The notes below the pieces were generated by a model that was not told the origin of the DNA, did not search any database, and was given only the letters and a program-made list of their open reading frames with translations. Of a stretch of DNA of 64,000 nt, positions 19,216-57,400 are shown piece after piece. Source of the stretch: Schmidtea polychroa (lineage: Eukaryota); contig CM097886.1 of assembly GCA_044892525.1 (NCBI GenBank), positions 76,570,001-76,634,000 on the forward strand. The letters are read 5' to 3'. The translations under genes and the position numbers were made by a program. Position 1 is the first letter of the stretch; every line of letters starts with the position of its first letter.

Positions 19216-19374
19216 NNNNNNNNNNNNNNNNNNNNNNNNNNNNNNNNNNNNNNNNNNNNNNNNNNNNNNNNNNNNNNNNNNNNNNNNNNNNNNNNNNNNN
19301 NNNNNNNNNNNNNNNNNNNNNNNNNNNNNNNNNNNNNNNNNNNNNNNNNNNNNNNNNNNNNNNNNNNNNNNNNN
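19216..19374. other. Assembly gap (N run)
   Basis: Run of N. Confidence 1.
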
Positions 19375-32424: not shown

Positions 32425-33495
32425 TTGTCCATAACGAACTGCTCAACATTCCGGATACAGCAGCTCATCTACTTCCGAGCAGACAGTCACTGTCGTCATC
32501 GTCAGAAGGCTGGACTAAACGATTTTCAGGATATAACAGTGTATTCTCAGACACAAAGTGGTCAACCTTTTCTTCGAATTGAAAGAGACGCGATGCTCAT
32601 CTTTGCTTCCGATGATGATCTACATTTCCTCTCTAGATGTGATCATTGGTTTGCCGACGGAACATTCAGAGTCACTCCGTCTGGATTCGATCAGCTTTAT
32701 ACCATCCATGGTTTCGTCAACGGTGAAGTTTATCCAGCAGTTTATGCCTTGTTAACTGCGAGAACTGAATATATCTATCAACGTTTCCTGCAAGAAATCA
32801 TGACCTTGAAACCTGATCTCAATCCAGTCTCGCTTGTCGTCGATTTTGAGCTGGCTTCAATTCGAGCTTTTCAGCACACATTTCAAGCAGCAACCGTCAC
32901 TGGATGCATGTTTCATTTTGGTCAGTGTGTTTGGAGAAAGTTACAATCAGAGGGTTTATCTGCAAAATATCGAGATGAACCCAATTTTGCACTTCGTGTC
33001 AAACGTCTTCTCGCCCTAGTATTTGTTCCAATCCCAGAAGTCATTGAAGTTTATGAAAGTCTGACAGCGGATCCAACATACCGTGACCTCGATGTTATCT
33101 GTGATTACATGGAGGATAACTTCATCAGTAGAGAAAGGAGGGGAATCAAAAGACAGCCCATATTCCCAATAGAACTTTGGAACCAATATTTGAGAGTCAT
33201 TCACAACTTGCCACGCAGCAACAGCAACATCGAAGGGTGGCACAACGCTTTCAACAATGTTGTTGGTTTTGCCCACACAATACCGACAAAACTTGCGCGC
33301 AAACTGCAACAAAAACAACACAGCACCCAACTACTGCGTCGTCAATTGGAATTAGGTATGCCGACGGGAAAGAAGAAGAAAATGTACATCCGCATAAACG
33401 ATGCACTACACACTATGGTCTCATACTACGTCAATCGAGACCCAGTAACATATCTGGGTGATGTTGCACGTGTTCTAAATATCAACGTCGTATAA
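32425..33495 (+). CDS. MULE DDE transposase (catalytic region)
   Basis: WFADGTFRVTP, QLYTIHG, VVDFELA, GCMFHFGQCVWRK, SNSNIEGWHNAFN. Confidence 0.92.
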   Translation: MSITNCSTFRIQQLIYFRADSHCRHRQKAGLNDFQDITVYSQTQSGQPFLRIERDAMLIFASDDDLHFLSRCDHWFADGTFRVTPSGFDQLYTIHGFVNGEVYPAVYALLTARTEYIYQRFLQEIMTLKPDLNPVSLVVDFELASIRAFQHTFQAATVTGCMFHFGQCVWRKLQSEGLSAKYRDEPNFALRVKRLLALVFVPIPEVIEVYESLTADPTYRDLDVICDYMEDNFISRERRGIKRQPIFPIELWNQYLRVIHNLPRSNSNIEGWHNAFNNVVGFAHTIPTKLARKLQQKQHSTQLLRRQLELGMPTGKKKKMYIRINDALHTMVSYYVNRDPVTYLGDVARVLNINVV

Positions 33496-34807: not shown

Positions 34808-34937
34808 NNNNNNNNNNNNNNNNNNNNNNNNNNNNNNNNNNNNNNNNNNNNNNNNNNNNNNNNNNNNNNNNNNNNNNNNNNNNNNNNNNNNNNNNNNNNN
34901 NNNNNNNNNNNNNNNNNNNNNNNNNNNNNNNNNNNNN
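34808..34937. other. Assembly gap (N run)
   Basis: Run of N. Confidence 1.
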
Positions 34938-38169: not shown

Positions 38170-38673
38170 TCAAACAGGCTTATTGGTAGGACTGGCCAAT
38201 TCCGTCGCAGCTGCTAGTGACGAATTTGCTTGTCGCTCGTATTCGGCCAGTCTAGCTTTCTTCAATTTTTCCCGAATATTTCGGCCTAACCGCTTTCTTT
38301 TGGGTTTCTCTTTCGCGGCCGGGGGGTATATTGCTGCTAGTTCCACGGTCAACGGCCGGATTTGGCTTATGGCGGCTCCGTGAACTACTTGTTCATTACG
38401 TTCGGTTTTTAACGCGCGGAGCTGGAGTTTCAGTGCCCGGATCTCCATCTGATCCTGCGCAGCTTGAGTCTGCAGTTGAAGGACCTGCGCCACCTTCTTT
38501 TTCATATCCTCGGGACTAAACCAGGTGCTTTCTAGTTCCCGGCACCGTCCCTTGAGCTTGTCTACTCGTATGCGGAGCTCCTCGGACTGTTTTTGAGCTT
38601 CTGCCCTATCTCTTCGCAGATTTTCCAATAGTTTGAACACTAGATAAATTCAACGATTATATTCTTGCAGCAT
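38170..38673 (-). CDS. Coiled-coil, basic (NLS-like) accessory protein; in-frame TGA at codon 8
   Basis: aatag-t-ATG at 38673; MLQEYNR*IYLV is in frame with the 156-aa ORF; KPKRKRLGRNIREKLKKAR. Confidence 0.55.
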
Positions 38674-38849
38674 ACTATTCATTCAATTATAAAATAAAAT
38701 CAATATTATAAATAAACATAGTTTCGGATGTTAAGCACGCAATACACAAGATGATTTATTAAAAGGACTGAAATAATTATCACTAAAATCAAAGTTTAAT
38801 AAAGTCACAACTGAATGATAATTTGCAAAAACAAAATTTTGACGATGAG

Positions 38850-39215
38850 TCAGTTCAGTCGCTTGCGAGGCCTTCCCCTCTTCCGCGGGGTTGCCTCGGC
38901 CTCTTCTAGGTCCTCCACGGTTTTTCCCTCTTTTTCTGCTTGGATTTGTAGCTCGATCTTCTTGAGTCGCATCTGAGCTGCTTCTACCTCGATGGCCGCT
39001 CGGTCGCGGGCCTCTTGCAAAAAATCGTTTGTGGGCTCTGTTTTTACCCACGCCGGAGCGTCCGGCTCCGGCCCACTCCTGATTACTGGGCCAAAGTTGT
39101 CGAGGTCCAAACCCCGATTCCAATCATGGATACGGTGCCATATGTACCGTGTACGGAGTCTGGTAAGCATCTGTCGGTCGGCTTCTTCGTGGCTATCGCT
39201 GTCAGAGTAGGACAT
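38850..39215 (-). CDS. 121-aa AT-hook/coiled-coil protein
   Basis: ATG preceded by attattttgtag-aa; C-terminal RKRGRPRKR AT-hook; VKTE SUMO consensus. Confidence 0.65.
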   Translation of the reverse strand: MSYSDSDSHEEADRQMLTRLRTRYIWHRIHDWNRGLDLDNFGPVIRSGPEPDAPAWVKTEPTNDFLQEARDRAAIEVEAAQMRLKKIELQIQAEKEGKTVEDLEEAEATPRKRGRPRKRLN

Positions 39216-40164
39216 TTCTACAAAATAATAATCAAGCCCCTCTATACTGATTGAGATACGACGTCAACCACAAGAGTTTGTTGACCCTTTTTCCCTAAAA
39301 AAAAAATATTTTATTTTAAGACTAACATCTATAAGCTTAGGAGCAGTGGAATAAGATTTCCTACTTTATCAAAACAAACACAAAAAAAAAAAGGAATTCC
39401 GTCAAAATTCGTTTGTTTAAATTAATCATTTCCATTCAAAATTTTGTTTACCACTGAGTGGTAATTTTAATTACTATTTATAAATTTTAATTTATATGTT
39501 AATAAAATGTGAATTTTTTTTTAGATCGTCATTTTTAGGCCACTAAATTCGGGCACGCTGGGGCGACAGGTACTAGCAACGAACTAAGCTCTTCGTCTGC
39601 TTACCTTTCCTTCGGTTGTGCTCGTTATGAGTGGTTTGCTCTACATGCAAGTAATTTATTTGATTTTTCTACTTCCTTATTTTTTAGGCGATAACATTAG
39701 GAACCTCGATCGAGTAAGGGGAATATATTAGCTTGGAGTAGTCTTCCCATAGTTCTTCCCAGGGAATGACATTTCATGCCCAATATTTGATTTGGACCCG
39801 CAATTTGTCCCTCGCAGAAAATTGGAAATTTTTCGGGAATATTTGTATTCTGTATGTAGGTAAATCTCTGCGAATTATGGCTTATTTATTCAATTGCATG
39901 GTTCGCCGGAGTCATCCTCACCATCTCCTGGAAACTCTTGATTGTCATAGCCCCGTCTTGAATTTTTCCTTAAGGTTTCTCTGGGGGGGGGGGGTGTTGC
40001 TAAATATAGATTTTCAGTTAGGAACGTTTTTATTGGGCAAAAGAATTGACTCCAAATCTAGATATGGGGAAAAATCAATAATTGATTTTTTGCTTTCCTA
40101 GTAAGTAATACTAATTATGATCATAACCGTAAAAATGGAGATAACGAGGATAACAAATGATCGT

Positions 40165-40310
40165 AGTGGTAATAATAATAATAGTAATAGTCATAATAAC
40201 AATAATGATAATAATAATAATGAGAATAATAAGGATAGTAATAAGAACAATAATAGCAATAATAATAGTAATAATGATAATGGCAACAATAATAATAATA
40301 GTGATAATAT
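40165..40310. repeat. (AAT)n-like degenerate microsatellite
   Basis: aataataatagtaat... run. Confidence 0.85.
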
Positions 40311-40559
40311 AACTTTATATTTTACCATTCGTATTTTGGCTTTCACCATTTAGGGATTCATATTTTATGAGTTCGAAGGTTACATTTTGCACTTTACAGG
40401 TTTTCGTCTACGATTTTCAATTTTTTATCTTACAGTTTATAAATTCATACTTTAGAAGTTCTCATCATACACTTTATAATTTATAAATTGTTTATTTAAC
40501 ATTTTACCATTTTATATTTTTTACTTCCTAATTTTCTATTTTCAGATTTATAGTTTCAT

Positions 40560-41000
40560 GGTCTACCATTTAGAAATTTGGATTCTTGATTTATGATTAT
40601 ATGGTTTAAATTTTTTGTTCAATATTTTACGACGTTATGTTTTCGACTTAATGGTTATGATTTATACAATTATAGTCTACTATTTAGAAATTTAGATTTT
40701 TACTTTATGATTATATAGTTTTTGCTGACAATTTATATTCAACATTTTACGATCTTACATTTCAGACTTCATCGTTATGATTTGCCCTTTTATGATCTAC
40801 AGTTTAGATTTTTGATCCATAGTTGTATAGTTTATAACTTATAATACTATATTCGGTATTTTAGACTTTATGATTATACTTTACACTTTTAAAGTCTACA
40901 ATTTAGAAATTTAGGTTTTTAATTTATAGTTGGTAGTTTTATATTCAGTAATTTACGGTTTTAGGTCTATAATTTATCAATATAATTATCTCCAAGCTAT
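40560..41000. repeat. Degenerate ~100-120-bp tandem repeat, ~4 copies
   Basis: gtctac(c/t/a)atttagaaattt(a/g)g anchors at 40561, 40675, ~40795 and 40894. Confidence 0.65.
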
Positions 41001-42908
41001 TATAGTTATTTATAAAAGTTATAATCAATTATTTATACCTTTAGGAATATGTTACAGTGAGAATTTAGATTCGGGATTCTTTTAAATTTATAACTTTTTC
41101 CTTTACGTTGGATTCATTAAGTCGGTGATTTATTCACAGGTCTATCCAAATTTAAGCTCTACTTAGACATAGGCCGAAGAATTTTACCATTTCTATTATT
41201 CCAATTACCATGGGCTCCTATTACCAAACCTAATTCGGCATATGTCCAAGTGTACCAAAATATTATTATTGATCAACCAACTACATTAATGTGCTTGCAG
41301 AATTGTGTAAGTTTAGGTATGAGCTCTACTCAATTTAGGACCTTAGTGTGGAGTCGTTGTTTATGATTTTGAATGTGGATTTTTCATGTGTATTAAACGA
41401 AAGTCGGGAAGAATATTGCTTCCATGGCCCCACTGTGACCACTTCTACAAACCTTAGTGTTGTGTGCTGAGTCAACCATTTACGGTTGACCTTGAATAAA
41501 TACAAAGAGTCAGGCGGAGGGTTTCCTCGACCTAACTCCATGGCAGGACCATGAAGTAGTTCGACCTCCGGCTGACCCGAACAAAAAGAAATCATATAAT
41601 AAATATCACTATAATAATGATAATGCGTGTCTGCATGTCCTGTTAATAACGATTTTAATAACTTGGATGCAGGACTGAACAACGACGCAGGAATACCAGT
41701 ACGCCGTTGATCACTCATACATCGCAAAAAATTTTAAGCAAAAATAGATTTAAAATACCATCTATATAATTAAACAATTAATATACAAATAAAGATCAAT
41801 GCTTACTATCGATTTTGGAAATTTCGTCACAAAAATTTGGCATAAAAAGTGATTGATTGTGACTGAAACGTGTCAGTATATATACCTATTTTGTACACGT
41901 GTATGTATTGATGCATTAAAACAAACTCGAATTCTTTTTATTCCAGAATTTTCTATTTTACGATTTTGCTATTTTTAATGGCAATTTTTGTGCCATAATT
42001 TTTGTTTTTATTTTTATATTTTTATTTTTTAATTATTTTTCATTAATTTTACGTCCATGATGGATTTGGAACGGTTCCAGAACATTCTATTTTACTTTTA
42101 ATTTAATTTTTATTTTAACTGATGTTTTTATGAATTCTTTTTGAGATTTTTTTTTTTTTTTTTTTTTTTTATTTTTAATACTAATTTATTTATTTTCCTT
42201 AACTTTTGTTGTTCTAGATAACTTTTGTGATGGTCATCGCCATTTTTATAGAATGTTCTGGGTTTTTCTGGAATGTTTTACTGTTTTTATCGTCTTTTAA
42301 GTTATTCGAGTCTGTTTTTTGTAACTCTGTGTTTATTTGGTTATTTTTGAGTTAGATTTTTGCATCACTTCTTGCTTTTGTATAATTTTGTTTAATTTCT
42401 TTGTTTATGTTTTTGTTGCTTTCTCCTTTAGTTAATATTGTTTATTTGATGTAATTTTAATATTTAGCTAAACGTCTTGCTTTTGCATGTTGTGTACCTG
42501 CACCTTTCAGTCACAATTCAAGTTTGGGTCTAGAAGTCAGTTCTAGCCCAACATAAAACACTCGGGGGCCCATAAAATTGCGACCCGCAATTTAAATCAC
42601 AAGATGAAGAAAATTATTTTTCAGAATACTTGCACTATATTACAAGTGCCTACATGCAAATTGGGTCTACGAGCTACAGGGTCGTGACCTCAATACCCAC
42701 ATACATAAAAAGGCTACTATTATACTACATTCTACGGATGGGTTGAAAGATGAAGAAAAAGAACGACCGAGGTCGGTCCACACAAAAATAAAATTATCAT
42801 GCTCAAGAATCAATGTTATTAGTCACAATCAGTCTCAGTCTTTGAAATCATGATTGTTTGATAATGTTTTATAATGTCATGAAATGTTTATACTGTCGTG
42901 ATGTCACA

Positions 42909-43883
42909 TTAATAAAATTCGGTTGTTCGGGATCTCGTCTCGATGACGGCTCTGGTTTCAATGTTTGGGGAAGATTTGAAGTAGCTTGGTTGGTTCGTTG
43001 TTTGGACTAGCTGTTCTTCCATTGGGATACGAATACTTCTTGATTGTTCCTTTAGTTTGAGGGTTTTGTTTCTTTCTTTACTGGAATTGGGTTTGAGTGC
43101 AATCAGGCTCAGTACGGTGATGTTTATCATTAGGCTCGCCGCTAATAGGATCAATATTGTGAGGGATTCAGACTCTCTCGGTTCTATTACTTTGGGTTTG
43201 TTCATAATTTCTTTTAATTGGGTTGTATCCGCCGTTTCTGATTTTTCGGGCTTATTGAATTTGTTTTCTTCTGAGGTGACAACTTTCTTTATTGCCTCAA
43301 GGGTTTTAATCATCTTCTCGGAGTTCGTTGGGTTTTTGTTTATGGTAGTTAGGATTTCCCTTGTCATTTCTTTCAAGGTTTTCGTTACCTCATTTTTAAT
43401 GCTGGGTTCCTCTTTGATGATGGAAGTTATTTTTCCTTTCATTTCCTCCAAAGATTTTACTACTGTTTCGCAATTGCTTGAACGTCCATAGGCGGTTGCT
43501 GTTACCTGTTGTTTTATTTCCTCTAATATTATTACCATCATTCTCATTGCGGCTGGATCTGTTTGGGATTCTCTCTTTGATTTCTGACTTTGACATTGTT
43601 TGGCTAATGTTGCTATCTGGGTTCTGATAACTTTCATTTCTTGTTCTAACATTGTTTTTATTGTCTGAGCCATTTGCACTTCCGTCGAACTTTCAGTTGT
43701 TTGTGGACATTGCGAACATTGTAACTTGATTTGTTCGCATTCCTCATTGGGTTTTTCGCAGATCGATTTAAAGCTACTACATCTGCGATATGGGTATTCT
43801 TTCTGGCATCTGATCATTGATTCTTCTGCTTGCAGGATTTTTGGCATTGTCATTATAATCATCATCACGATTAGGCTTCTCAT
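42909..43883 (-). CDS. 324-aa type I membrane protein (signal peptide, Cys-rich N-terminus, coiled coil, TM)
   Basis: MRSLIVMMIIMTMPKILQA signal; 6 Cys within 31 aa; TM LTILILLAASLMINITVLSLIAL; aag|ATG. Confidence 0.75.
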   Translation of the reverse strand: MRSLIVMMIIMTMPKILQAEESMIRCQKEYPYRRCSSFKSICEKPNEECEQIKLQCSQCPQTTESSTEVQMAQTIKTMLEQEMKVIRTQIATLAKQCQSQKSKRESQTDPAAMRMMVIILEEIKQQVTATAYGRSSNCETVVKSLEEMKGKITSIIKEEPSIKNEVTKTLKEMTREILTTINKNPTNSEKMIKTLEAIKKVVTSEENKFNKPEKSETADTTQLKEIMNKPKVIEPRESESLTILILLAASLMINITVLSLIALKPNSSKERNKTLKLKEQSRSIRIPMEEQLVQTTNQPSYFKSSPNIETRAVIETRSRTTEFY

Positions 43884-43959
43884 CTTTACATATACATATA
43901 TGTTAATAATAATTACTTGGCTTTATTTACAATTTATTTACACGGTTATTTTGTCTCAT

Positions 43960-44727
43960 TTATTGGGAGCCACCGACCTCATCCCTTAATTTTACGGGAG
44001 GTTCAGGTGCTCGTCTTTTGCTCAACTCGTTCATTCTTATTACTTCGAGTTGCGTTGCTATCAACTGTCTCTTTAATTCTGGTATTTCTTGTAATTGCTT
44101 CTCTTTACTTTTCCATTTTCTCTGCTTGATGGTTATTGCCGTCTGCAATGCTTGCATGCTTCGTCGTTTTTGATTTAAGATTCTCCGGTAATTTTCTTTC
44201 AACTTCCATTGTTTTTCTGTTTCCTCTCTTTGTTCCTTGATCTCTTCCTTGAGTTTTACATTTCTCTTCTCGACTTTTTTACTTTCTCGCACTCTTGTTT
44301 TTGCATAAGCATATTGTGCTTCTAACTGCTCGATATAGACTTGGTCGATATTCACAATCTTTTTCAACTTCCTTGTTTCTGATTTCCAATAATCTTCGAT
44401 TACTGCCTGAGCTCTCAACTCTACTATCTCTTGTCTCAGGTTTTTATTTTCTGTCTCTTTTCGTTTCGATTCCTTTATTTCCCTCAAAATTTCTTGCTTG
44501 ACAGTGTTTATTAATCGTCTTGATTGAACAATATGCTGCCTCAATCTCGTAATCTCTACATTTTGATTTGCAATCTTTAATTTGAACAACTTCTTGCTGA
44601 CTCTCCATTTATTGCTATAATATTTCATCGGTTCTTGCTTGATTGGTATCATATCCTGGTTTTGTTCAGGTTGGTCGTTTGACTTTCCTTCGTTACTCGT
44701 TGATTCTCTTTCTTTTAAATAATTCAT
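43960..44727 (-). CDS. ~255-aa basic coiled-coil accessory protein
   Basis: Intact ORF; likely start MNYLK after tatttttgtag-at; heptad-rich in K/E/R/Q. Confidence 0.7.
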   Translation of the reverse strand: MNYLKERESTSNEGKSNDQPEQNQDMIPIKQEPMKYYSNKWRVSKKLFKLKIANQNVEITRLRQHIVQSRRLINTVKQEILREIKESKRKETENKNLRQEIVELRAQAVIEDYWKSETRKLKKIVNIDQVYIEQLEAQYAYAKTRVRESKKVEKRNVKLKEEIKEQREETEKQWKLKENYRRILNQKRRSMQALQTAITIKQRKWKSKEKQLQEIPELKRQLIATQLEVIRMNELSKRRAPEPPVKLRDEVGGSQ

Positions 44728-44818
44728 ATCTACAAAAATATACATATCATATTTCCTTTTGTCTTCTTTTTATTCTGAATTTTTCGGTTTTGTAATTTTT
44801 ATTTGGTTTTGGTTTTAT

Positions 44819-44819
<1 letters not shown>

Positions 44820-44862
<43 letters not shown>
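44820..44862 (-). repeat. 43-nt poly(A) tract (element sense strand)
   Basis: T43 on the plus strand, ~33 nt past the stop of the 44895 ORF. Confidence 0.9.
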
Positions 44863-44894
44863 CATTCTTATTTACAGGCAACATCTCCCTTCGA

Positions 44895-46493
44895 CTAAAT
44901 CCATGTTGCGTTATTTTGTTCGTTATTTTCATCGAAGCCTTCATCTGTGGTGACTTCGGCAGGCTGTGGCACTTGCAACGGGAACGGGTAGAGTGGCATT
45001 AATAATATTGGTGGTTGTCTCCTTAACCGATCTATTTCCTCTCGTAGTTCCGTTGAGATGTTTATTTCCTCATCCAATAAAAACGTTAATCTACCTTCGT
45101 TTTCTATCATTTCGTTTAATTCCTCTTCCAATCGTTGGGTTCTTTCGAGCGTTTTTAGTTTCTCAATTTCCGCTCTCAAATTTGCTTCATTTTCTTCGAA
45201 GCATCGTTTTATTATCTCGGTTTCCTGTTTGGTTTGTTGAATTGTCTTGTCGCACTCCTCTCTATATTTCGCATTAAGCTCAATCTGGTGCTTCCAATTC
45301 ACATCCCTTTGGGTGTACATACCTTTATATCCGTTCATCTCTTGATTGGCTTCTTCCACTTCGGTTTGTAATTGTCGGATCTGTCGATCTTGGTCTGTCA
45401 ATTGTTGTTCCCATCTCTTTTCCTGGAATTCATACCTTCTTATTTCTCGAGTCTGTTTCTTTATGATTCTCTGTCTACCGTCGCTGATCCGCGTCTTGAT
45501 TCTATATTCTCTACTCAATCGGCTGATCTCATCTTTTTGGTTTTCTATCGTTTCCCATATTTTAAATTCGTCTCTTTCCATCAGTTTTATTGGTAACTGT
45601 CTTAACTCCTCTTTGGTCTCTTTCCAATTCTTTTTCCATTTTCGGGCTTGATGCTTGAGACACTTTTCGGTTTCCTCAGTTTTCTGCTGTCGTTTTCTCC
45701 ACTCTACTTCCTCTTCTTCTCGCTGTGCAGCTCTTGTTTCGTAAAATTCTTGGTCTGCTTTTCGTAATCGCAGTTGTTCCTTGCTACTGATTTTCCAATA
45801 GAGCACTTGAGTTTGACTTCCTAGGTATTTATACTTCCATTTCTGGGCTTGTATCTTTATTTGTGTGTTAATTCGCTCTAATACGTTATCTCTAACAATT
45901 GGTTCTCTATGCGGTGTTCTCCTCCCTTGCCCTCTGACTTCGTTTAGGGTCTTTTTGCATCTTTCCCATTTTTCTTTCATCATTGCGCATTTGCCCTTTA
46001 CTTCTTCTAGTTCGGCCTTGTAATTCCGTATTTGATGTTCGTGACTATCATTCTGCCTTGTCTGGAGGGTTTCGTACTTTAGCTTCCATTGTTGCGCTTG
46101 TAGTTTTATTCGTTCCGTTTTACGCTGTTCCTCCTCGTATTGCTCCTTTGCTTCCCTAATTTGTGCCTTCTGCATTATTATCTCTCCGCATAACCCAACT
46201 ATCTCCATAATCCGCTGAGTTCGTAAATTCGAGAGCTCTTCCTCCAATTCTTGGTATGTTGAGGTATTTCTCACATCCTCGGTTAATTCCTCTACCTGTT
46301 TCATCCACTCCTCCTTTGTTGCTAGTGCTTCCGCCTTCTCCGCTTCTAATTCTTGTTGCTTTTTCTCATACATGGTTTTGTACATTTCTATTTCTCTCTT
46401 TACTCTTTCTGCTTCGTATGTTTGTATGATGGATTTGTACTGTTCGAGTTGTTGCATCTCGGTTTCCACATAGGTTTGTGATTCTTTATTCAT
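44895..46493 (-). CDS. 532-aa long coiled-coil accessory protein
   Basis: Intact ORF, E/K/Q/R-rich, repeated QAxxWKxK motif; attatttag-aca-ATG. Confidence 0.8.
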   Translation of the reverse strand: MNKESQTYVETEMQQLEQYKSIIQTYEAERVKREIEMYKTMYEKKQQELEAEKAEALATKEEWMKQVEELTEDVRNTSTYQELEEELSNLRTQRIMEIVGLCGEIIMQKAQIREAKEQYEEEQRKTERIKLQAQQWKLKYETLQTRQNDSHEHQIRNYKAELEEVKGKCAMMKEKWERCKKTLNEVRGQGRRTPHREPIVRDNVLERINTQIKIQAQKWKYKYLGSQTQVLYWKISSKEQLRLRKADQEFYETRAAQREEEEVEWRKRQQKTEETEKCLKHQARKWKKNWKETKEELRQLPIKLMERDEFKIWETIENQKDEISRLSREYRIKTRISDGRQRIIKKQTREIRRYEFQEKRWEQQLTDQDRQIRQLQTEVEEANQEMNGYKGMYTQRDVNWKHQIELNAKYREECDKTIQQTKQETEIIKRCFEENEANLRAEIEKLKTLERTQRLEEELNEMIENEGRLTFLLDEEINISTELREEIDRLRRQPPILLMPLYPFPLQVPQPAEVTTDEGFDENNEQNNATWI

Positions 46494-46575
46494 TGTCTAA
46501 ATAATTACACTATTACTACCACTATTATTTCATACATTTATTATCTACACTTTATACACGGAATTTTAATTTTTG

Positions 46576-47754
46576 TTATTGATCGGCGTAGCGGAATCCT
46601 TTGATTCGCTGCGCAATCCTCTGTCTGCACATCGGACATTCCTTTACTTTTCTACTACATGTGGCACATGCGATCAAATGTCCGCATGGCATATGAATAA
46701 CTTCTACACTCCTCTCCCAACACATAGTACATTTGATATCTCGTAAGATAGCTGTTTTGACCATTGATTCTTCTTTTATTTTTGTTTCAGGTTTTTCTCT
46801 ATACTGGGTTATCGCTCTGATCATATCGTACGTTGTTGTTGGTATATGTACATTTTTCTGTAGTTTCTCTCTAATCATGTTCTTTGCCCTTGTCGTGCCT
46901 ATTCCGGCTGCTTTCAACGCTCTGCACATGTTGGGTTTGTCTACCACTTCGTCAACCTCTTCCTCTGTTACTAGTACTTCCGGATATTCGGTTTCTTGTT
47001 CGTTGTGATATAGGCACCATGCTTGATGTCTAATTTCTGGTATGCCTTCTTCCGGTAATCTCTGTTGGCTTTCGCATCTTTCACACTTTAGTATTTGATT
47101 TTCTGTTAGGTAGAACCCTCTTATTGCTAATTCAGGTCCTCTCGTATCATCTCCGAACGTTTTCATTCTATTATCTGCTATTTGCGTGAGGAATTCCCCT
47201 TCACAAGTTGGAACATACTCATCAACGATTCTGGTTATCGCGATGCTCATTTTCCCTCCTTTTTCGTCTTCAGTTTTCAATTTCTCCAAGGCTTCGTATT
47301 TGATTTCCGGTTTGTTGTGTACATCAAATCCCAGTACGAATAGACAAGTTGGGAATCGTCTACGATGTTCCTCCTTTGGGTGTTCTCCTTTTTTCCATTC
47401 TGCTAATTTCCCTTTACAGAAACGACATGTTACTTGATCGGGTATCTCTGGTTTTCCGGAGAAGAAAAATCCGTCGCGTGCTAGCGCTCGGCTCTGTTCC
47501 TTGGTGAAAATGGTCTGATGTTCAAATGACAGATATCTCTGGTTCTCACATCTGAATTGTTCATTATCTCCCAGTTTCAAATTTTCGTGTACCCAATTAT
47601 AATCGTTTCCCATTCTCCGATAATATGCGTAACTACTTGGTTTTGTTTTGCTGACTTCCGCATCCTTCACTCTTTCTCTAGGTGACATATTGTCCTCTTC
47701 CTCTCTCATTGTGATCGTTTTCTTTCGGATATTCGGTCTCTCTTGATTAATCAT
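46576..47754 (-). CDS. Inhibitor of apoptosis protein (BIR + degenerate BIR + UBA-like + RING), intronless
   Basis: LARDGFFF...VTCRFC...W..GEHP.EEHRRRFPTCLFV; C-terminal RING CTMC...PCGHLIACATC....CPMCR. Confidence 0.92.
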   Translation of the reverse strand: MINQERPNIRKKTITMREEEDNMSPRERVKDAEVSKTKPSSYAYYRRMGNDYNWVHENLKLGDNEQFRCENQRYLSFEHQTIFTKEQSRALARDGFFFSGKPEIPDQVTCRFCKGKLAEWKKGEHPKEEHRRRFPTCLFVLGFDVHNKPEIKYEALEKLKTEDEKGGKMSIAITRIVDEYVPTCEGEFLTQIADNRMKTFGDDTRGPELAIRGFYLTENQILKCERCESQQRLPEEGIPEIRHQAWCLYHNEQETEYPEVLVTEEEVDEVVDKPNMCRALKAAGIGTTRAKNMIREKLQKNVHIPTTTYDMIRAITQYREKPETKIKEESMVKTAILRDIKCTMCWERSVEVIHMPCGHLIACATCSRKVKECPMCRQRIAQRIKGFRYADQ

Positions 47755-47894
47755 CTATAATAAATTTCATCATTTCTTTTTACATTTTCTTTTTCTAATT
47801 TTTATGGTTTTGGCAAGTTACTTTACTGTATACAATAACTTTATATTTACTTTACGTCGTTTTTACAAAATATTTACAGTTCCCTCCTATCCGT

Positions 47895-49319
47895 CTATCG
47901 TATTTCTATTGTTGGTCCTTCCTCATCTAGTTCGATTAGGAAGAATATAGTGTCCTTTTCTATGTAGGACCCTTCATTAAATTGGTATAGCTGCATAAAC
48001 TCTGCTACTCCTACCGCAGGATTAACCTCTGTAATCGGTTTATTCCCTGCTGGACTGGATGCTCGAAAACACATTATATGTGTCTTTTTTGCTCCTAAGA
48101 GAGATATTTTTAATCTATGTCGGAATGGCCATGCTATTAGGTCGTCAAAATCTCCTTTACAAATTTGCATATATATGGACATGCACCGATCTTTAAACTT
48201 TCCTTCACCATTTGGAAACCATCTCAATTTCATCTTGTATCCATGTTTCTTGGCGTAGAATGGTTTGCTCACTATCGTTGTCTGGATTCCTTGCTTTGCT
48301 TGCTCCATTATTTCCGTTATTCCTTGGATTTTCCACATGTATGGTAGTATTGGTAGTTCCTCTGTTGTCAGTTCCTTTGTAGTCCATTTGGTTTGTAATT
48401 TAGTTACTTCGACTAATTTGTCGTCTAATTTCAACATCCTTTGTGTTACGGCTTCTCTCGTATTTTCGAAGCTTTCCTGTGAGCTCAGCATTTCTTTTAT
48501 CATGATTTTATGTGATTTGAGTTCGTCTTTGACGTCTTCAATTGCTCTTGCTGTTAACTCTATTGCTCTCATCATCTTTTGCATGTGCTCGAATGTATTC
48601 TCCTCCACATGCTTCTTCATTTCTTCTGCTGGTAATTGTGCTCTACAGTCGAATGTCACCATTGGGCATTTTATTGCTTTTCTCGTGCATATCTCCCAAT
48701 GTTCATTTAATCTGACGTTGTTAATTTCTCCACACTCGTTTGGGCATTTCCCTGTATATTCGTCGCAAATCCGTCTTTCTACTGCGTTTCGATGTTCCAT
48801 TTCGATTTCTCTCCAATTAGCAGTTTCTCCGCAAAATTCGCATTTTTCCGTTCGCGCTTTGCATTCCCCTTTATGTTTGGTTTTCTCTTTTCGTAAAAAC
48901 TTTACCGTGCATGCTTCGCATTCCGATTCTAGATATTCGCATACGTCTGTATGGGCTCTTAACTCCTTTACTCGGCCTGTCCATTCGCATGACCTTTGGG
49001 TGCATCTTATTTTCACTTCTCTGATTTCTCGGTTCATTGCTCTATCCGGTATCGTACCAGTGGGGACCAACTTAAATGCTTCTCCACATCCTGGACAAGT
49101 TTCTCGTTTTAGTCTGGCTAATCTTATATCACACCCTCGGCACAATCTACACCCGCATCGAGTTTGACTTGCTCCAATTAATAATCTTCTACATGCTGTA
49201 TCGGCACATAATAATCTCTCTTCGAACTCGTCCGGCTCGGCTTGGTATTTTCTCATCAACTCATAGTTAATCTTTTGTTCCTCTGCTTCTCTCCGGTTTT
49301 CCTCTGCTTTGTTTTGCAT
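47895..49319 (-). CDS. TRAF-like protein (RING, TRAF zinc fingers, coiled coil, MATH), intronless
   Basis: CGCRLCRGC..TCPGC, DRAMNREI, CEWTG...H..VC, MATH YMWKI..SKPFY..GYKMKLRWFPNG..SIY..ICKGDFDDLIAWPF. Confidence 0.93.
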   Translation of the reverse strand: MQNKAEENRREAEEQKINYELMRKYQAEPDEFEERLLCADTACRRLLIGASQTRCGCRLCRGCDIRLARLKRETCPGCGEAFKLVPTGTIPDRAMNREIREVKIRCTQRSCEWTGRVKELRAHTDVCEYLESECEACTVKFLRKEKTKHKGECKARTEKCEFCGETANWREIEMEHRNAVERRICDEYTGKCPNECGEINNVRLNEHWEICTRKAIKCPMVTFDCRAQLPAEEMKKHVEENTFEHMQKMMRAIELTARAIEDVKDELKSHKIMIKEMLSSQESFENTREAVTQRMLKLDDKLVEVTKLQTKWTTKELTTEELPILPYMWKIQGITEIMEQAKQGIQTTIVSKPFYAKKHGYKMKLRWFPNGEGKFKDRCMSIYMQICKGDFDDLIAWPFRHRLKISLLGAKKTHIMCFRASSPAGNKPITEVNPAVGVAEFMQLYQFNEGSYIEKDTIFFLIELDEEGPTIEIR

Positions 49320-49408
49320 TCTACAATGATGATTTTTAATCTTGGGATTTCTACTTGATTATAACTCTATTTATTTACAGGATTATTTACATTTCACTCC
49401 TTTTTCTC

Positions 49409-49864
49409 CTACACATCTACCGTCGAGTCCGGTTCCCCTGTTCCTGGTAACCCGGTCATCCACTCGACTAAACTGGTAATATCATCATGTTGTCGATTTT
49501 CATGCAACCTTCTAATTTCTTCCGCTTGCCATCTGATTTGGCTTATTAACTGATTGTTATTATACTCTAGTTGCGCGATTATTTGGTGTTGTTCCTCTAT
49601 TTTTGTAATATATATTGCATTTCTATTAATACTCTCTATCAACGCCGTTTGGTTTCGTACCCAGTGCTCTTGAGTCTGATTTGTCAATTGGGTCATTAAT
49701 TCACACTGTACCCTCCACATGGATCCTGTTGGCTGACTCGGCTGGTTTGGCACGTTCATTTCCATCATGTCTACTGGATGTACATTCATAAGCGGCTGTT
49801 CTCTTACTTCAACAACATGTGGTATCCTATTTGGGTGTTCTTGCTCTTCGTTTCTCTGGTTCAT
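49409..49864 (-). CDS. 151-aa small coiled-coil accessory protein
   Basis: Intact ORF, Q/N/E-rich heptads; tattataaatag-ga-ATG. Confidence 0.6.
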   Translation of the reverse strand: MNQRNEEQEHPNRIPHVVEVREQPLMNVHPVDMMEMNVPNQPSQPTGSMWRVQCELMTQLTNQTQEHWVRNQTALIESINRNAIYITKIEEQHQIIAQLEYNNNQLISQIRWQAEEIRRLHENRQHDDITSLVEWMTGLPGTGEPDSTVDV

Positions 49865-50012
49865 TCCTATTTATAATACATGGTCATCATACTTGTTTTT
49901 GATTTTTCTACATATTGTTTTAATTTACTACTTTTATTTTGTACATACTACTACTATTATCACTACTTTTATTATTTCATTTATACATTATTTACAACAA
50001 CTCCTCCTCTCG

Positions 50013-51407
50013 TTATACCAGTGTCGCCATGGGGCCGGAATGCAGCGTGCGCATTCCCCCATATCTTTCGTCCGTTATTCGGTATATATCGACTTCGTGT
50101 GTCCATTCGTTCGGTGTGGGTATTCTTGGTAGTTCCGACATCCACAATCCGCTGGATCCGGGATCCTCTACCACCTCGTATTCTTCTAGATTCAGATTCT
50201 CTGTTGGAATACCGTATTCAAATTTTTCCACTTTGGGCCATTTTCTTTGGTTTCTCGGTTTTTGTTTACATCTTTTGGTGGTTCTTATCCACTGAATCAT
50301 TGCTAACGCTATTATCGTGCTTACTATCGCGCTAGTTATCCATATCATCTTTGTGATGATCGTTGTTCCATTATTTGTTTTTTCTGTCGTTAATATTGTA
50401 CTACCTGTGGTATTTGTTTCTGGTGCTTTGATTTTCTTGAATGCTTGATGTAATCGTTCCTTCTCTTTTTCTGTTAGGTGACTGTGATTTTCCCGTTTCT
50501 CTCCCCCTTCTTGATCTCGGGGTATCCACGGTATGTTTATTAATTGGGGTTTTTGTCGAGTTATTGGTTGACATACGCTGGTTCCTCTTCCTTTCTTAAG
50601 GATACATACTTGGTATCGTTCTTTCCGTTTCCCTGTCTCCATTTTAACGTCTGTACCTTTGTCTATCGGTGTTGTTGTACAGTCGATTATTCCCGTCTTA
50701 TCCATTACACATATCCTTATGATTGGTTCTCCTTCCTGGTTTTTGACTGTAATTACCTCTTCACCTTTCTTGTTGAGGTTAATAGTTATCTGCACTTCCC
50801 GTCTTTCGTCTTTAATTACTTCGTTAATCCATGTTGTTGTTGTTATTAATTCGGTTTGATTTTGCTCTGTTGTTGTTTTTGTACTAACTGATTTGTTTGG
50901 CTTCTTGGTTGTTATCCCCCTCAATGGATCTTGTTTCATTGCCATACTCTTTGGCTTGTCTTTTCTTGGTGCAGTTCTTGTTCCTTTACATACTACTATC
51001 CCTTGTGTTCCTGCGCATACCACAGTAGGGGTATTTGGTTTGACCTCTCCCCAGAAGAATTTGTGGTCTTGTGTCATATCAGTTATTATGCATATGTCTC
51101 TGTCTTCTCTGATGCATACATGTGTAATTGATCGACTCCCTTTATCTTCTATTTCGATACCTTCTTCCAAAATGTTGAGTTGAAAATGTACTCCGGTTTC
51201 GTTGGCTCTTTCTAGCTCCATTTCCTCTGTTGATATGTCTCTACAGATGTCATAATCTCCACATAGCCTGGGATCTCTTTTTTGGCTGCTAAAAATCTTT
51301 CCTTTTGTTATCGATCTGAAATCACAACTTACTCCTGTTCCTTCCATTAGTTGCACACATATTCCGACGGCATTTCCGTCGTAATCCTGACTTTTATCAT
51401 AAATACT
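50013..51407 (-). CDS. Type I membrane glycoprotein-like ORF overlapping the polyprotein end (-1 frame)
   Basis: Frame open from 51407; Cys-paired ectodomain, Thr-rich stalk, TM MIWITSAIVSTIIALAMIQWI, tail with Tyr motifs; no own signal peptide or upstream ATG. Confidence 0.75.
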   Translation of the reverse strand, partial: SIYDKSQDYDGNAVGICVQLMEGTGVSCDFRSITKGKIFSSQKRDPRLCGDYDICRDISTEEMELERANETGVHFQLNILEEGIEIEDKGSRSITHVCIREDRDICIITDMTQDHKFFWGEVKPNTPTVVCAGTQGIVVCKGTRTAPRKDKPKSMAMKQDPLRGITTKKPNKSVSTKTTTEQNQTELITTTTWINEVIKDERREVQITINLNKKGEEVITVKNQEGEPIIRICVMDKTGIIDCTTTPIDKGTDVKMETGKRKERYQVCILKKGRGTSVCQPITRQKPQLINIPWIPRDQEGGEKRENHSHLTEKEKERLHQAFKKIKAPETNTTGSTILTTEKTNNGTTIITKMIWITSAIVSTIIALAMIQWIRTTKRCKQKPRNQRKWPKVEKFEYGIPTENLNLEEYEVVEDPGSSGLWMSELPRIPTPNEWTHEVDIYRITDERYGGMRTLHSGPMATLV

Positions 51408-54400
51408 TCACCTTCTTGGGAAGCTTCTCTTACGATTCCCATATTTTTTGTTTCTGTTAAACAGATGGATGTTAATATTATAAATATTCTTTGTAGTAGG
51501 ATTGGCTGGATTTGATTTCGACACACTATGCTATGTAGTGGGGACTTTCGTTTTTTGTTCTCCGTTTTGTCGAATCCTTGATCTTCACCTCGACATTGGT
51601 CTTCTTCGTCTTCTTCCAATTCCTCATCATCACTCGTTGTTTCTCCGCCTTCCGGATTCTGTTCTCTGTCGTTTTCCTCTGGGTTGTTATCGTTATCCCC
51701 CATCCTTTCGTCGTCGTCGTCGTCGTCATTCCTCTCACCCGGGGTTTTCCTGAAAATGTCGTCCTCGACATTTGCTGCTTTGATCATCTCCTCGTATTTT
51801 TTAATTATCTCTTTTTTGTCGTTGTGGATACTTTCTCGTTCTTCTTTGGTTCCTTGATATTTCCGTTGTTTCCGGTGCCATTCCCACACTAGTATTTCTA
51901 GTTGCTTTTTCATCGCATGTGTTTTTGTGCATTCCCACCAATTACCTGTCAATTCTGTTCTATTTCTCTGTAATATTGCTTTAATGGTTTTTGGCATTGG
52001 TGGTCTTGAGTATATGGCGCTTCTTAGTACGATATTTTCGTTGTTTTGGAATTGATTTATATCAATTACTTCCGCTCTTAATTCGTTTTGTTTCCATTTG
52101 ATTAATATTGCTGCGGTTCTGTCTAAGTTTCCTCTGATGGCTTCCAGAATTGGTTCAATGCTCTGTCCCAACACCTCGGCTTCTTCGGTTGTTGCATTTC
52201 CTGTGATAAAGTTCACTATACTAGGTCTTTTTGACCTGACGGCATAACGTAATACGGTTCGTTGTTTGTTATCTTTTTCTTTCAGCGTGGATCCCGTTCT
52301 TAATAATTCTCTGAGTACATCTCTTGACGCGCCTATTGCTATGGCTTTCATCAGTGGAGTTTTTCCTTTACTGTTTTTGACGTTTGTTGATTGTTTGCAG
52401 TTTTCCATTATTCGTATAATCTCTAAAGCTCGTTTTTCTTGTCCTGCTTTCACTGCATGATGGATTGGCCAGTTATTACTCAAATCACTTGTTAGGAACA
52501 TGATTGGTAATCTCCGGATTAGTTCATATATTTGAGTCGGTATTTGTAATCCTTCGGCATATCTTCGTCCTTTCGCATATCTTTCTGCTACTAACATTAG
52601 TTTGCCCAATACTTGGTATTTATTGGTTATATCGGCCCATTCTGGTACAATTTCTCGTGCTATTTTTATTGTCATATTCCATGTTGCTTGGCTCCTTGCC
52701 ATTGCGTCAGCTTCGCTTTCTGCTTCAGTTCCTTTATGGGCGCTGCTGCTTGTTTCTCCTCTCAACATGAATATTCGTCTTGTCTGTGATCTAGTTAATC
52801 TACCGCTTACTTCTGGTTCCGTTGTGGCATTTGTTTGTGATCTCGTGATTATCCTTCTTGTTTCTGGGTCTTTAGTGGCAGTTTTCGCTACTGCTTTGCA
52901 TCGACATGTATTCACATAAATGGGTCTAATTAGTGGATTGTTAACCAACTTCACTCTAGCGTTGTTCTCGTTTACATAGATGATTTCATATGGCCCTCTG
53001 CCATTACGTTGTAATTTCTTTGCTGTTCCTGGGATTAATTCGGGTGTTTCTATAATAACCCAATCTCCGATTTTAAATTGATGGTTTTGCACGTTCTTCT
53101 TTTTATCATGTAATTCCTTATAACTCTCTTGGTTGAATCGGATGTTCATCCCTGCGGTTTTCCATATTTCTTGCATTCTCTCCTTGAACTTTGTCACATA
53201 ATCATCTATCTCCATATATTGTGAGATTGGCGGTTGGTATTCGAGATCCATCGGCATGTTGCATTCCCTTCCATACATGAGTTTAAACGGACTCATTTTC
53301 GTTGCTGAGTGTATTGACATTCGATAAGCCATTAGACACAACTTAATATATTCATCCCAGTCCTTTTGATGTTTACTCACGTAATTGGACATCATGTCTA
53401 TTAGTATGCCGTTAAATCTTTCTGTCTGACCATTCGTTTGCGGGTGGTATGGTGAGGTTCTCAATTTGGCAATTCTAAAATAATTTGTCACTTCATTTAT
53501 TATCTCGCTCATGAAATTAGTTCCTTGGTCAGTTAAGATTTGTTTTGGTGTTCCATATCTGCAGCAGATCTCTTCCACTAATATCCTTGCAACCGTTCGT
53601 GCTTTCTGGTCTGGCATCGCAAATGCTTCAGGGAACTTAGTCAGATAATCAGTTATTACCAATATATACACATTTCCACTGTTAGTCTCTGGTAGTGGTC
53701 CAACTACATCCATTGCAATCATTGTCATCGGTTCTGGCGGTATCGGCATTGGTTTCAATGGTGGCTTTAGTTTACTGCCCGTTGTTTTTCTGGTTGCGCA
53801 TATCAGGCAGTTCTTTATCCATTCTTTCACGTCATCGCTCATATTTGGCCAGTAATATTTCTGTTTGAGCCTTGCTTCTGTTTTCTTGGCTGACATATGT
53901 CCGCCCAATTTACCATCGTGGTATTGAATCATAATTTCTTTCCGTCTACTTTCTGGTAGACACATCAATCGTTTGTCGCCATCCATTACCAATAGCCATC
54001 CTTTCTCGATCGTATATCTGTGACGATTTTTCTCCATGTGTTCTTTTAGTCGATCATCGTTGTTGAATATTTTCATATCGTTTTTTTCCAGGAACTCAAT
54101 TATTAGTTTTAATTCATTGTCTTCCTTTTGTTCGTTCTTTAGATTGGTAAAATCGATATCTTCCGCGATTATCAGGCATATTCGTCTGACGTCATGATCC
54201 ATGAGTTCTTCAAATACAAATCTCGACATGCAGTCTGCATTTGCGTTTGCTTTTCCTGACTTGAATTTGATGTATGGGGAATATTCTTGTAACTGCATTG
54301 CCCATCTCATCAATCGACTAGATGCCTCTTTATGTTGGCCCAACCAAACTAGAGGTTGATGGTCCGTAGTAATAATTATCTCGTGTCCCCATAATAAATA

Positions 54401-57400
54401 TTTGAAATGTTTTATCGCCTGAATTATTGCTAAGGCTTCTCTTTCTGTGACCGAGTAATTCTTCTCGTGTTTTTTGAACGTCTTGCTATAATATCCGATG
54501 ACTCTTTCTCTTTTCTCCTCATCCCATTGTCCTAGCACAGCTCCTGATGCGTATCCACTTGCATCAGTTGCTAATAAAAAAGGCTTTTTGAAATCTGGGT
54601 GGATTAAGATAGGCGAGGCTATTAGTTTATCTCTGAGCGATTCGAAAGCTATTTGCTGTTCCCTTTCCCACAGAAATGGAGTATCTTTTTTTGTTAGTTC
54701 TTGAATTGGTTTTGCGATAGTTGCATAATTTTTGATAAACTTGCGGTAGTATCCGCATAATCCCAGAAATTCTTGTACCTGAGTCACGGTTTTTGGTATC
54801 GGACAATTCTTTATTTTCTCAACGTTTCTCGGATCTGGTTCTTTTCCTTTTGCCGACACAATGTGTCCTAAAAATGTGACTCTCTCCTTTGCCCAGTCGC
54901 ATTTTGACGGTTTCAATTTCAGCTTCCATTGTTTCAGTCTTATGAATACGTTTCTGATGTCGATTAAGTGTTGCTCGAAAGTACCTGAATAAATTAACAG
55001 ATCATCGATATACACCATACATTGTTTGATCCCGTGTGTCACAAAGTTCATACATCTCTGAAACGAAGCAGGTGCGTTTGTTAATCCAAATGGCATCTTT
55101 TTAAACTGATATAAATCTTTTCCGATGGTAAAGGCTGTCTTTTCTCTATCTTCCTCTTTAACTTTAATTTGCCAGTATCCACTCTTTAGATCTAAAGATG
55201 TAAAGTATGCTGCTCCATGTAACATCTGTAACATTTCGTTAATATCTGGCAGTGGGTATGTATCCCTTTTTGTTACTGCATTCAACCTCCGATAATCGAT
55301 ACAAAATCTCTGTGTGCCATCTTTCTTTTTGACCATTACTACTGGAAATTGCCAGGGTGAACAGCTAGGTTCGATCACTCCGGCATCTAACATCTTTTGT
55401 ACCTCCTCCTCTGCTACCGTTTTCTGTGCTTCGGCTAATCGATATGGTCTCAAAGTTATGGGTGTCTCATCCGTTAATGGTATAATGTGTTGCGTTACAT
55501 CGCTGGTACCCAAATCCAAATCTGAAGCCGCAAAAATATCTTTAAACTCAATCAGTAGCTGTCTGAGTTGTTCCTTTTCGTCTTCATTTAGGAGTTCGCT
55601 ATCGATGGTCCATAATTCTTTTTCGTCTGCTCCCTCGCTTTTGATCTCCGGCAGCTCAATGTTCATCATTGGTGTGAGTTTTCCAAGTCTCTCGTTTTCG
55701 TAGATTACTTTATCTTCCTCATCAAAATTGGTGATGTTGATGGGTATCTCGTTATCCTCATTTATACTGACAATTTCTCTTGCCAATGGCAGCTCCCTTC
55801 TCTTCTCGAATTTTTGACTTGGTTCAAATATCATATCTCCTTTGGCTTCGTTATCGACCTTGACATAACATATTGTCTGGGTACGTGCTGGTATTATCAT
55901 TTTTTCGGAGCATCTCACTTCTGTTCTCATTGTGCATATCTGTCCAGTTTTATCTTTTAATTTCATGGAACTTAAATCAATCACAATTTCTTTCAATAAT
56001 TCCGGCATTACATCTGTTCCAATTATACATGATACGCTTAGCTGTCTAATGACTGCGAGGTACGTTGTAACTTTAACCCCTTTGTATTCGATCGTTGACC
56101 ATACTCTTCCTACTACCGCTATGGATTGTTTGCTGCATGTTATTACATCCATGGTTGTCTCCTCAATGCATGGCCATAGTCTTCCTGGTAGCATATTCAT
56201 ATTTATTGCTGAGATATTTGCTCCGGTATCAATCATTGCATCCATCTCTATTCCGTTTACTTCGACCGTGATAGTTAACGATGGTCCTGCTGGTGTCTGC
56301 AATACCGCAATCGTTCGTGTCTCCACCTCTTGCCCCACATTTTTAACTGGCTTGATCATTGTTGGGTCCATTGCTGCCCAATTTGGTTCATACGCCGTTG
56401 GGTAAATATTTGGTACGGGTAATCTCCCGGTTCCCATTCTTATCCGTTCTCTCATTGTCCCTGGTCGTCGCATTGGCCCATTGGTTGGTGCCTGTAAATA
56501 TGGTGATCCCCATGGTTTCCTTTTTTCGTTTTCCCAAGTGTCTGTATTTTTGTTTATCAACATTACTCCTCCTTGATTATTATCGTCATCGTCGAAATCA
56601 TCATTGTCATCACTATCATCGTCTCGTCTGAGATTCATCCACTTTTTCCACTTCCCGGTTCTTTTCGCTTTCTCTTGAGTTCTTTCCGCTTCCAATCTCA
56701 TTATCACTTTGAACTTACGTCCGACTTCTTCATCTGTCCCTTTCATTTGCGTTAATATTTTCAACAATCTTTTTATTCGATGAATATCCTTTGAGTGTCC
56801 ATGCAACACCATTGTTTTCGCTAGGAACGGTAAGAATCCAATTGCAAGTTTCCAATTTACTTTTCTCTCGCGCTTATAGATGTCAAAACATGCTAGCATC
56901 TGAGTTAGTATCACTCTAACTATTTGTATTATCAGAATTATTCCGAGTATCCCTGCCATCATTTGGCCAAATACCAAAAATCTACCCCACATAGCCTTCA
57001 TCATGTTTGCTGTTGCTTGTTGGTAGTGACTTGGTGATAATAATAGCTCGTAGTTCGGGCTCTCCCCATAATTATTTCCTCCAGAAATAGTCACTATATT
57101 TGATAAGATTGCTTGTCTTTGCGCTGGGAATAACAGGTGGGCTCTTGCTGATTCGAGATCTTTTGGTGTATATAATCCACTCTGGGATACGTCTATCGGC
57201 TTGAACTCTAGTTCTGTTGTTAGTTCCGTCAATCCAAATTTCTTGGGCGTTACTACGATTGTTTTACTTGGGAATTGAACCCATTGTCCATCTTCTTTTT
57301 CATACATTGGTCCATATGCATTACTACAATTAAACAGATTTGGTTGAAACCCTACCGGGTTCATTACCCTAGTGACTGCTTGCACAAACCTGGGTTTACC

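Follow-up and report, generated by a model that had tools for sequence, protein, structure and literature searches.

We analysed a 64,000-nucleotide stretch of Schmidtea polychroa DNA (contig CM097886.1 of assembly GCA_044892525.1, positions 76,570,001 to 76,634,000; hereafter the window), whose sequence identifies part of it as the 3' half of a giant retrovirus-like Ty3/gypsy element of the Burro type, with a modular array of seven accessory genes after the polyprotein. Six of the seven start codons of this array stand 0-3 nt behind AG dinucleotides that close T-rich tracts, and these AGs are, with high probability, working 3' splice sites that yield subgenomic mRNAs. Taken as a whole, the best explanation, which we hold with slightly less than even confidence, is a Burro-type element whose accessory array is spliced and is resolved in an operon-like manner with the spliced leader (SL) of the host.

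The element and its accessory array

The element lies on the minus strand and its polyprotein is followed, on the same strand, by seven intact open reading frames (ORFs), each named after its length in amino acids (aa).

51347..64000, minus strand: giant polyprotein ORF, which runs off the window edge with more than 4217 codons open
50013..51347, minus strand: ORF447, an orphan with a C-terminal membrane span; no acceptor-like AG
49409..49864, minus strand: ORF151, an orphan
47895..49319, minus strand: ORF474, TRAF-like with the full TRAF architecture (RING/TRAF zinc fingers and a TRAF-C MATH domain)
46576..47754, minus strand: ORF392, IAP-like, with BIR and a C-terminal RING
44895..46493, minus strand: ORF532, charged and repetitive (coiled-coil-like by eye only), no family match
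43960..44745, minus strand: ORF261, charged and repetitive (coiled-coil-like by eye only); the ATG after the acceptor-like AG is 44727
42909..43883, minus strand: ORF324, the last array gene, with one membrane span and a hydrophobic N-terminus

The polyprotein frame contains neither a stop nor a frameshift inside the window, and its Pfam matches come in the order CCHC zinc knuckles (gag), MATH/TRAF-C, a Monjiviricetes-type class III fusion glycoprotein, aspartic protease, reverse transcriptase, RNase H, integrase and ankyrin repeats. The gag knuckles lie near the N-terminal part of this single polyprotein of more than 4000 aa, the env-like fusion glycoprotein is in frame between gag and pol (PF24664 Monjiviricetes_fusion, E=1e-67), and the protease to integrase order of Ty3/gypsy pol occupies aa 2517-3460. 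Burro/GYPSM1 are giant gypsy-like elements of dugesiid planarians in which MATH, BIR and ankyrin cargo has already been described (PMC6431247), and modules of all three Burro types (MATH_TRAF, BIR, ankyrin) are present in our element. The likeness extends to the giant single polyprotein, the gag CCHC knuckles, MATH_TRAF, the mononegavirus-like fusion glycoprotein between gag and pol, the ankyrin repeats that follow the protease-reverse transcriptase-RNase H-integrase series, and the BIR among the accessory ORFs (PMC6431247; Grohme et al. 2018); an in-frame env between gag and pol, shared with Burro/GYPSM1, is otherwise unique (PMC6431247). Unlike Burro as described, the element gave no Pfam match to BCL-2-like or dUTPase-like modules, either with the whole polyprotein ORF (E up to 0.01) or with its N- and C-terminal pieces (E up to 1), and the assignment to Burro rests on architecture, not on nucleotide identity to Burro1-4. 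These two modules vary among the described Burro elements.

A search for long terminal repeats (LTRs) inside the window returned low-complexity repeats, with neither an LTR pair nor a recognisable 3' LTR; the 5' part of the element and its 5' LTR lie beyond the window. Between about 44 kb and 64 kb the sequence is uniform in base composition and in strand skew, so the cargo looks long resident in the element. In sequence collections, exact-protein look-ups of ORF392, ORF151 and ORF474 returned no record, and homologue searches with ORF392 and ORF474 together with a full HMMER scan with ORF447 gave remote matches or none; therefore, no closer copies of the array appear to exist in these collections.

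The six spacers between the accessory genes measure 148, 89, 140, 82, 167 and 76 nucleotides (nt), 702 nt in all. They hold 20 additional ATGs upstream of the accessory ORFs and would therefore make poor 5' untranslated regions (UTRs). The spacers are unstructured (z-scores -0.8 to +2.5), no strong donor-like site was found inside them, and Rfam and transfer RNA scans of the window gave no match. The polyprotein and ORF447 have no spacer: the stop of the former and the ATG of the latter share one base in a stop-start pentanucleotide (51345-51349, minus strand) with no AG nearby. This overlap suggests either coupled termination-reinitiation or an acceptor farther upstream, inside pol.

Relatives of the element

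Searching with the pol region recovered polyproteins of the same architecture, with 43-47% identity, in metagenome assemblies. From this search and an alignment of the RNase H-integrase region, nine distinct loci with sequence downstream of pol were retained; the contig L002 was excluded beyond about 17.1 kb, where the segment 17100-24948 is of high GC content with bacterial-type gene calls and is probably a chimeric assembly. Behind pol, the relatives carry ORFs for one or two paralogues of a protein of DEDD/RNase_T-like type, which has no relation to the cargo of the window, and most of these ORFs begin directly behind a T-tract and AG. A wider alignment of this accessory protein was too divergent for use, and a scan of viral contigs with it for subgenomic forms returned no relatives.

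Two of the relatives, L001 and L003, carry a donor-like AG/GTAAA in the LTR, between a TATA-like box and a shared primer-binding-site-like motif. The latter is an identical 13-nt motif after the 5' LTR (L001:3003-3015, L003:323-335). L003 begins in the TATA region of the 5' LTR, reaches as far as the corresponding region of the 3' LTR and so represents a whole element of about 16.7 kb. In a third relative, L009, the first spacer (10282-10617) has a perfect donor-like AG/GTAAGT about 105 nt past the pol stop and, about 230 nt later, an acceptor abutting the next ATG; this spacer could hold an ordinary intron. L009 also encodes a small charged, repetitive protein (coiled-coil-like by eye) with a proline-rich tail, which resembles ORF532 of the window in type.

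Acceptor-like sites at the gene starts

Six of the ATGs in the array are preceded on the minus strand by an AG at the end of a T-rich tract; T counts refer to the 12 nt before the AG, and the gap is the number of nucleotides between AG and ATG.

49867..49880, minus strand: acceptor-like site before ORF151, 6 T in the 12-nt tract ahead of the AG; gap 2 to the ATG at 49864
49321..49334, minus strand: acceptor-like site before ORF474, 5 T; gap 1 to 49319
47755..47768, minus strand: acceptor-like site before ORF392, 6 T; gap 0 to 47754
46497..46510, minus strand: acceptor-like site before ORF532, 7 T; gap 3 to 46493
44730..44743, minus strand: acceptor-like site before ORF261, 8 T, which ties the top T count among the 1896 AGs of the strand; gap 2 to 44727
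43884..43897, minus strand: acceptor-like site before ORF324, 5 T, the weakest tract; gap 0 to 43883

An earlier sequence-only reading of this DNA had listed eight genes, each with an AG 0-3 nt before its start. The pattern stands for six of the seven array genes; of the two remaining starts on that list, 39215 belongs to a separate unit and 38673 opens no gene, and ORF447, which lacks the pattern, had been overlooked. The ATGs at 49864, 49319, 47754, 46493 and 43883 are the first of the 151-, 474-, 392-, 532- and 324-aa ORFs. For ORF261 the AG context at 44727 was correctly read, although the first in-frame ATG is 44745 and 44727 is a later one.

An AG beside an ATG is by itself weak evidence on this purine-rich strand, where 35-42% of all ATGs have one 0-3 nt upstream (P ~0.002-0.03 for AG alone). 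The evidence for an acceptor is strong where a T-rich tract leads up to the AG. The element strand is 42% A and 19% T, and the 12 nt preceding an AG contain on average 2.2 T over all 1896 AGs of the strand, compared with 5-8 T at the six array sites; depending on the site, 2 to 108 of the 1896 match or exceed it. The combination of AG and T-tract was found at none of the 20 other ATGs in the spacers. When the window and the nine relatives were considered together, an AG within 0-4 nt preceded by at least 5 T in 12 nt was present at 15 of the 22 post-pol ORF starts, compared with 5.0% of the 2825 other ATGs on those strands (P=4e-15). The relatives alone gave 9 of 15 (P=8e-9). Additionally, the 6- and 7-mers enriched in 21 pooled spacers include acceptor-like words, and the AG beside the ATG is retained in orthologous trios with 34-48% protein identity. 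The T-rich tract on an A-rich strand, its recurrence in distant relatives and its retention in orthologous ORFs together lend good support to the earlier proposal that the AGs are splice acceptors.

A conserved octamer at the gene ends

The same spacers share a second signal. The octamer TGTAAATA occurs seven times on the 21.4-kb element strand, and all seven copies fall within the 702 nt of spacer sequence, for which the expected number is 0.13. In five of the six spacers the first copy lies 17-19 nt past the preceding stop, and the sixth spacer has a degenerate version.

49989..49996, minus strand: TGTAAATA, 17 nt past the ORF447 stop
49372..49391, minus strand: two copies of TGTAAATA, 18 and 30 nt past the ORF151 stop
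47871..47878, minus strand: TGTAAATA, 17 nt past the ORF474 stop
44869..44876, minus strand: TGTAAATA, 19 nt past the ORF532 stop
43924..43942, minus strand: two copies of TGTAAATA, 18 and 29 nt past the ORF261 stop
44820..44862, minus strand: run of 43 A on the coding strand (A43), beginning 6 nt past the TGTAAATA copy behind ORF532

The octamer is also found 17-19 nt past stops in the relatives L004, L005/L011 and L009; in L009 it stands behind all three ORFs, with no further copies, and it is the top enriched 8-mer of the 21 pooled spacers. The hexamer AATAAA, which the sequence-only reading had taken for the spacer signal, was rejected as a gene-end signal, its 8 occurrences being at the chance level of 6.9 expected from composition. 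The motif scans used generic consensus strings for the 5' splice site (an octamer), the poly(A) signal (a hexamer) and the Pumilio recognition element (PRE).

TGTAAATA is an exact match to a common variant of the PRE, UGUANAUA, and sits, like a PRE, in what would be the 3' UTR (PMC11602169). The Pumilio reading best accounts for the conservation of all eight positions, and the octamer may, also or instead, act as a Pumilio site tuning message stability. Unlike known PREs, it keeps a fixed spacing of 17-19 nt from the stop. Alternatively, it may be part of a 3'-end signal, in support of which the A43 run lies behind one copy. Finally, the octamer contains GTAAAT and might thus serve as a weak splice donor.

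The linkers of 16-18 nt between stop and octamer (e.g. 49997-50012) are rich in purines, and in four of the six spacers they have a GGAGG- or GGGAG-like core. Homopolymers of at least 15 nt occur only twice in the window, at 44820-44862 (the A43 run) and at 42147-42170 (A24), and both consist of A on the coding strand; A24 is situated about 740 nt past the last array gene and about 20 nt past an AATAAA. These two runs are possible fossil poly(A) tails, hinting at cassettes captured from polyadenylated RNA.

Proposed expression of the array and alternative explanations

Splicing is the simplest account of the gene starts because a conserved acceptor-like site abuts the ATGs and removal of the ATG-laden spacer would make the ORF the first of its message. 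We propose that a long precursor RNA would be driven by the LTR, that the ATG-laden spacers would be removed by splicing at the AGs, and that each accessory ORF would thereby become the first ORF of its own subgenomic mRNA. The 5' partner would be the host SL and each upstream cistron would end 3' near TGTAAATA, as in a flatworm or nematode operon. We put forward the SL as 5' partner, with separate 3' ends near TGTAAATA, tentatively, judging it a little below an even chance. Flatworm operons are defined by spacers of at most 300 nt and are resolved by SL trans-splicing, which S. mediterranea possesses (PMC12582326); the array, on one strand with spacers of 76-167 nt, lies within that limit. 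All reported flatworm SLs end in AUG (PMC12582326), and 16 of the 20 acceptor-to-ATG gaps would suit an upstream exon with AUG at its end (P=0.003, post hoc test). The gene-end motifs of the cistrons and the lack of a strong donor in the spacers point the same way. The fullest version of this proposal, a true operon in a retrovirus-like element with an SL-resolved seven-gene array, an element-specific motif identical to a Pumilio site that marks the 3' end of each cistron, and cassettes acquired as polyadenylated RNAs, is possible, although we incline against it.

Several observations weigh against this reading. The frame-bias test was devised after the data had been seen, the 5' LTR and leader lie off the window, which leaves room for a leader donor, and the donor-like AG/GTAAA in the leaders of L001 and L003 favours cis-splicing. 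ORF447 has no acceptor signal, and the array proteins have neither an exact record nor a close homologue in sequence collections. Because canonical AATAAA is not enriched in the spacers and planarian poly(A) sites are without a UGUA element (PMC5068929), the 3'-end role of TGTAAATA rests on one A run.

From sequence alone, the choice between trans-splicing with the host SL and cis-splicing from an LTR leader cannot be made. In the latter case, as in complex retroviruses, one donor in the leader would be joined to alternative acceptors before each ORF, and the 3' ends of the messages would lie in the 3' LTR or else, on the pattern of the adenovirus major late unit, at internal poly(A) sites; we regard this as a serious but minority possibility. 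The acceptor evidence is identical for both, and cis-splicing is the usual expression route of post-pol genes in retroviruses and errantiviruses. The donor-like site common to the leaders of L001 and L003, the only two leaders with one, fits this route, but the match in two leaders is barely beyond chance, and the exons that it would produce do not end in AUG, so that the frame bias is left unexplained. Cer1 of C. elegans does make a cis-spliced subgenomic mRNA (PMC3315495), and flatworm acceptors are often common to cis- and trans-splicing (PMC12582326). The array, however, would call for introns of 13-21 kb that skip up to six competing acceptors, and 3'-coterminal messages need no conserved gene-end motif.

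Three further explanations appear much less probable. Each spacer could be a small intron, with the GTAAAT in TGTAAATA as donor and the AG as acceptor, leaving a polycistronic RNA with gaps of about 20 nt that is translated by termination-reinitiation. Both conserved motifs would then come under one mechanism, the implied introns of 47-148 nt are plausible, the first spacer of L009 has a perfect donor-like site, the linkers between stop and motif are purine-rich, and the polyprotein stop and ORF447 start already overlap. Nevertheless, an invariant T before the GT and an A at intron position 5 make a weak donor, the conservation of all eight positions better fits an 8-mer bound by a protein, the motif is missing from half of the relatives, and eukaryotes reinitiate inefficiently behind ORFs of 150-530 codons; we consider this improbable. 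A similarly low probability is given to a promoter of its own in each spacer, producing unspliced mRNAs, with the T-tract and AG as promoter or initiator context. The spacers are AT-rich with TATA-like strings, and an internal promoter drives env in some Oikopleura Tor elements, yet a 3' end, a promoter and a 5' UTR would all have to be accommodated in spacers of 76-89 nt, any such start site would be separated from the ORFs by the 20 upstream ATGs, and a promoter gives no reason for an invariant AG beside the ATG in unrelated genes and distant relatives. Least probable of all, and very unlikely in our judgement, is that the pattern reflects chance and composition, or that a polycistronic RNA stays unspliced and is translated by internal ribosome entry. 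An AG near an ATG is common on this strand, and A-rich unstructured leaders can support cap-independent initiation; against this stand the significance of the combined T-tract and AG signal and its conservation in the relatives, and, for ribosome entry, the lack of structure in the spacers and an invariant AG for which such entry has no need. Spacers in the manner of mononegavirus gene junctions, an idea prompted by the mononegavirus-like glycoprotein, were rejected, considering that an integrated element is transcribed by the host polymerase and that an A run is present in one spacer only.

Remaining sequence of the window

Between the array and a GC-richer unit lies an AT-rich block (40300-42500), which comprises tandem units of about 100-120 nt (40526-40927) besides further low-complexity repeats. 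The GC-richer unit (38170-39700, minus strand) is separate and without a family match, and may belong to the 3' LTR of the element or to flanking DNA; its sole strong donor-like site, AG/GTAAGC at 39604, is 385 nt upstream of the acceptor and ATG at 39215. The latter is a real start, of a 121-aa ORF (ORF121) with an AT-hook-like C-terminus, and its context had been quoted correctly, but it lies 3.7 kb past the last array gene in sequence of different composition and does not belong to the array; most simply, it would be an ordinary spliced exon of the separate unit. The ATG at 38673, also proposed as a gene start, meets an in-frame stop after 7 codons. Nearby, at about 38642, a further acceptor-like site precedes an ORF of 156 aa that is charged and repetitive (coiled-coil-like by eye). 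An SL-RNA-like gene was briefly suspected around 39.6 kb and dropped, and a permissive Rfam scan of 38-43 kb gave no SL RNA or small nuclear RNA.

The remainder of the window (1-38000) contains ORFs of 110-356 aa on both strands (e.g. 5151-6517, 9099-9927 and 32425-33495), which look like remnants of other mobile elements, and N runs at 19216-19374 and 34808-34937.

Comparison with known expression systems

The Burro element type and its cargo classes are already known (PMC6431247), as is the addition of an SL to a retrotransposon message, in Cer1 (PMC3315495). Our literature search found no description of the start and end grammar of the accessory cassettes, of its conservation across unrelated cargo or of the motif identical to a PRE at a fixed position, nor of how a retroelement of 25-30 kb expresses a long tail of cargo genes. 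Planarian genomes abound in Burro elements, and RNA of BURRO1 has been detected in differentiated planarian tissues (PMC6431247, PMC8532177). Paired signals across unrelated cargo, T-tract-AG-ATG at the start and TGTAAATA at the end, would define a modular expression grammar, which would explain how such elements keep gaining genes, and the two motifs are convenient sequence handles for annotation of this family's accessory genes. If the host SL is indeed used, the array would amount to an operon carried by a retroelement and would be a plain instance of SL trans-splicing put to use by a mobile element.

The closest retroelement for comparison, Cer1, is likewise a Ty3/gypsy element in an SL trans-splicing host; its spliced subgenomic mRNA occurs with and without SL1, and its consensus splice sites must be skipped for full-length RNA (PMC3315495). 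The earlier statement that no retrotransposon is known to use SL trans-splicing in this way was thus too strong, as the Cer1 message carries SL1 in part. By analogy, Cer1 shows that cis- and SL trans-splicing can coexist. Unlike the array, Cer1 produces a single subgenomic message, assembled from several cis-spliced exons, rather than seven cistrons with their own acceptor and gene-end motif.

With the SL operons of flatworms and nematodes (PMC12582326) the array shares the single strand, spacers below 300 nt, an acceptor immediately before the downstream cistron and a putative 3'-end region in the spacer. Unlike them, it sits in a mobile retroelement behind a polyprotein gene of more than 12 kb, makes a proposed rather than an established use of the SL, and has a conserved spacer motif that is not the canonical poly(A) hexamer. 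The array also resembles complex retroviruses and the adenovirus major late unit, in which one promoter serves many alternative acceptors just upstream of accessory ORFs, and the adenovirus unit has, in addition, several internal poly(A) sites. Retroviral accessory ORFs, however, usually overlap and share the 3' LTR end, whereas the genes of the window are discrete cassettes with dedicated non-coding spacers.

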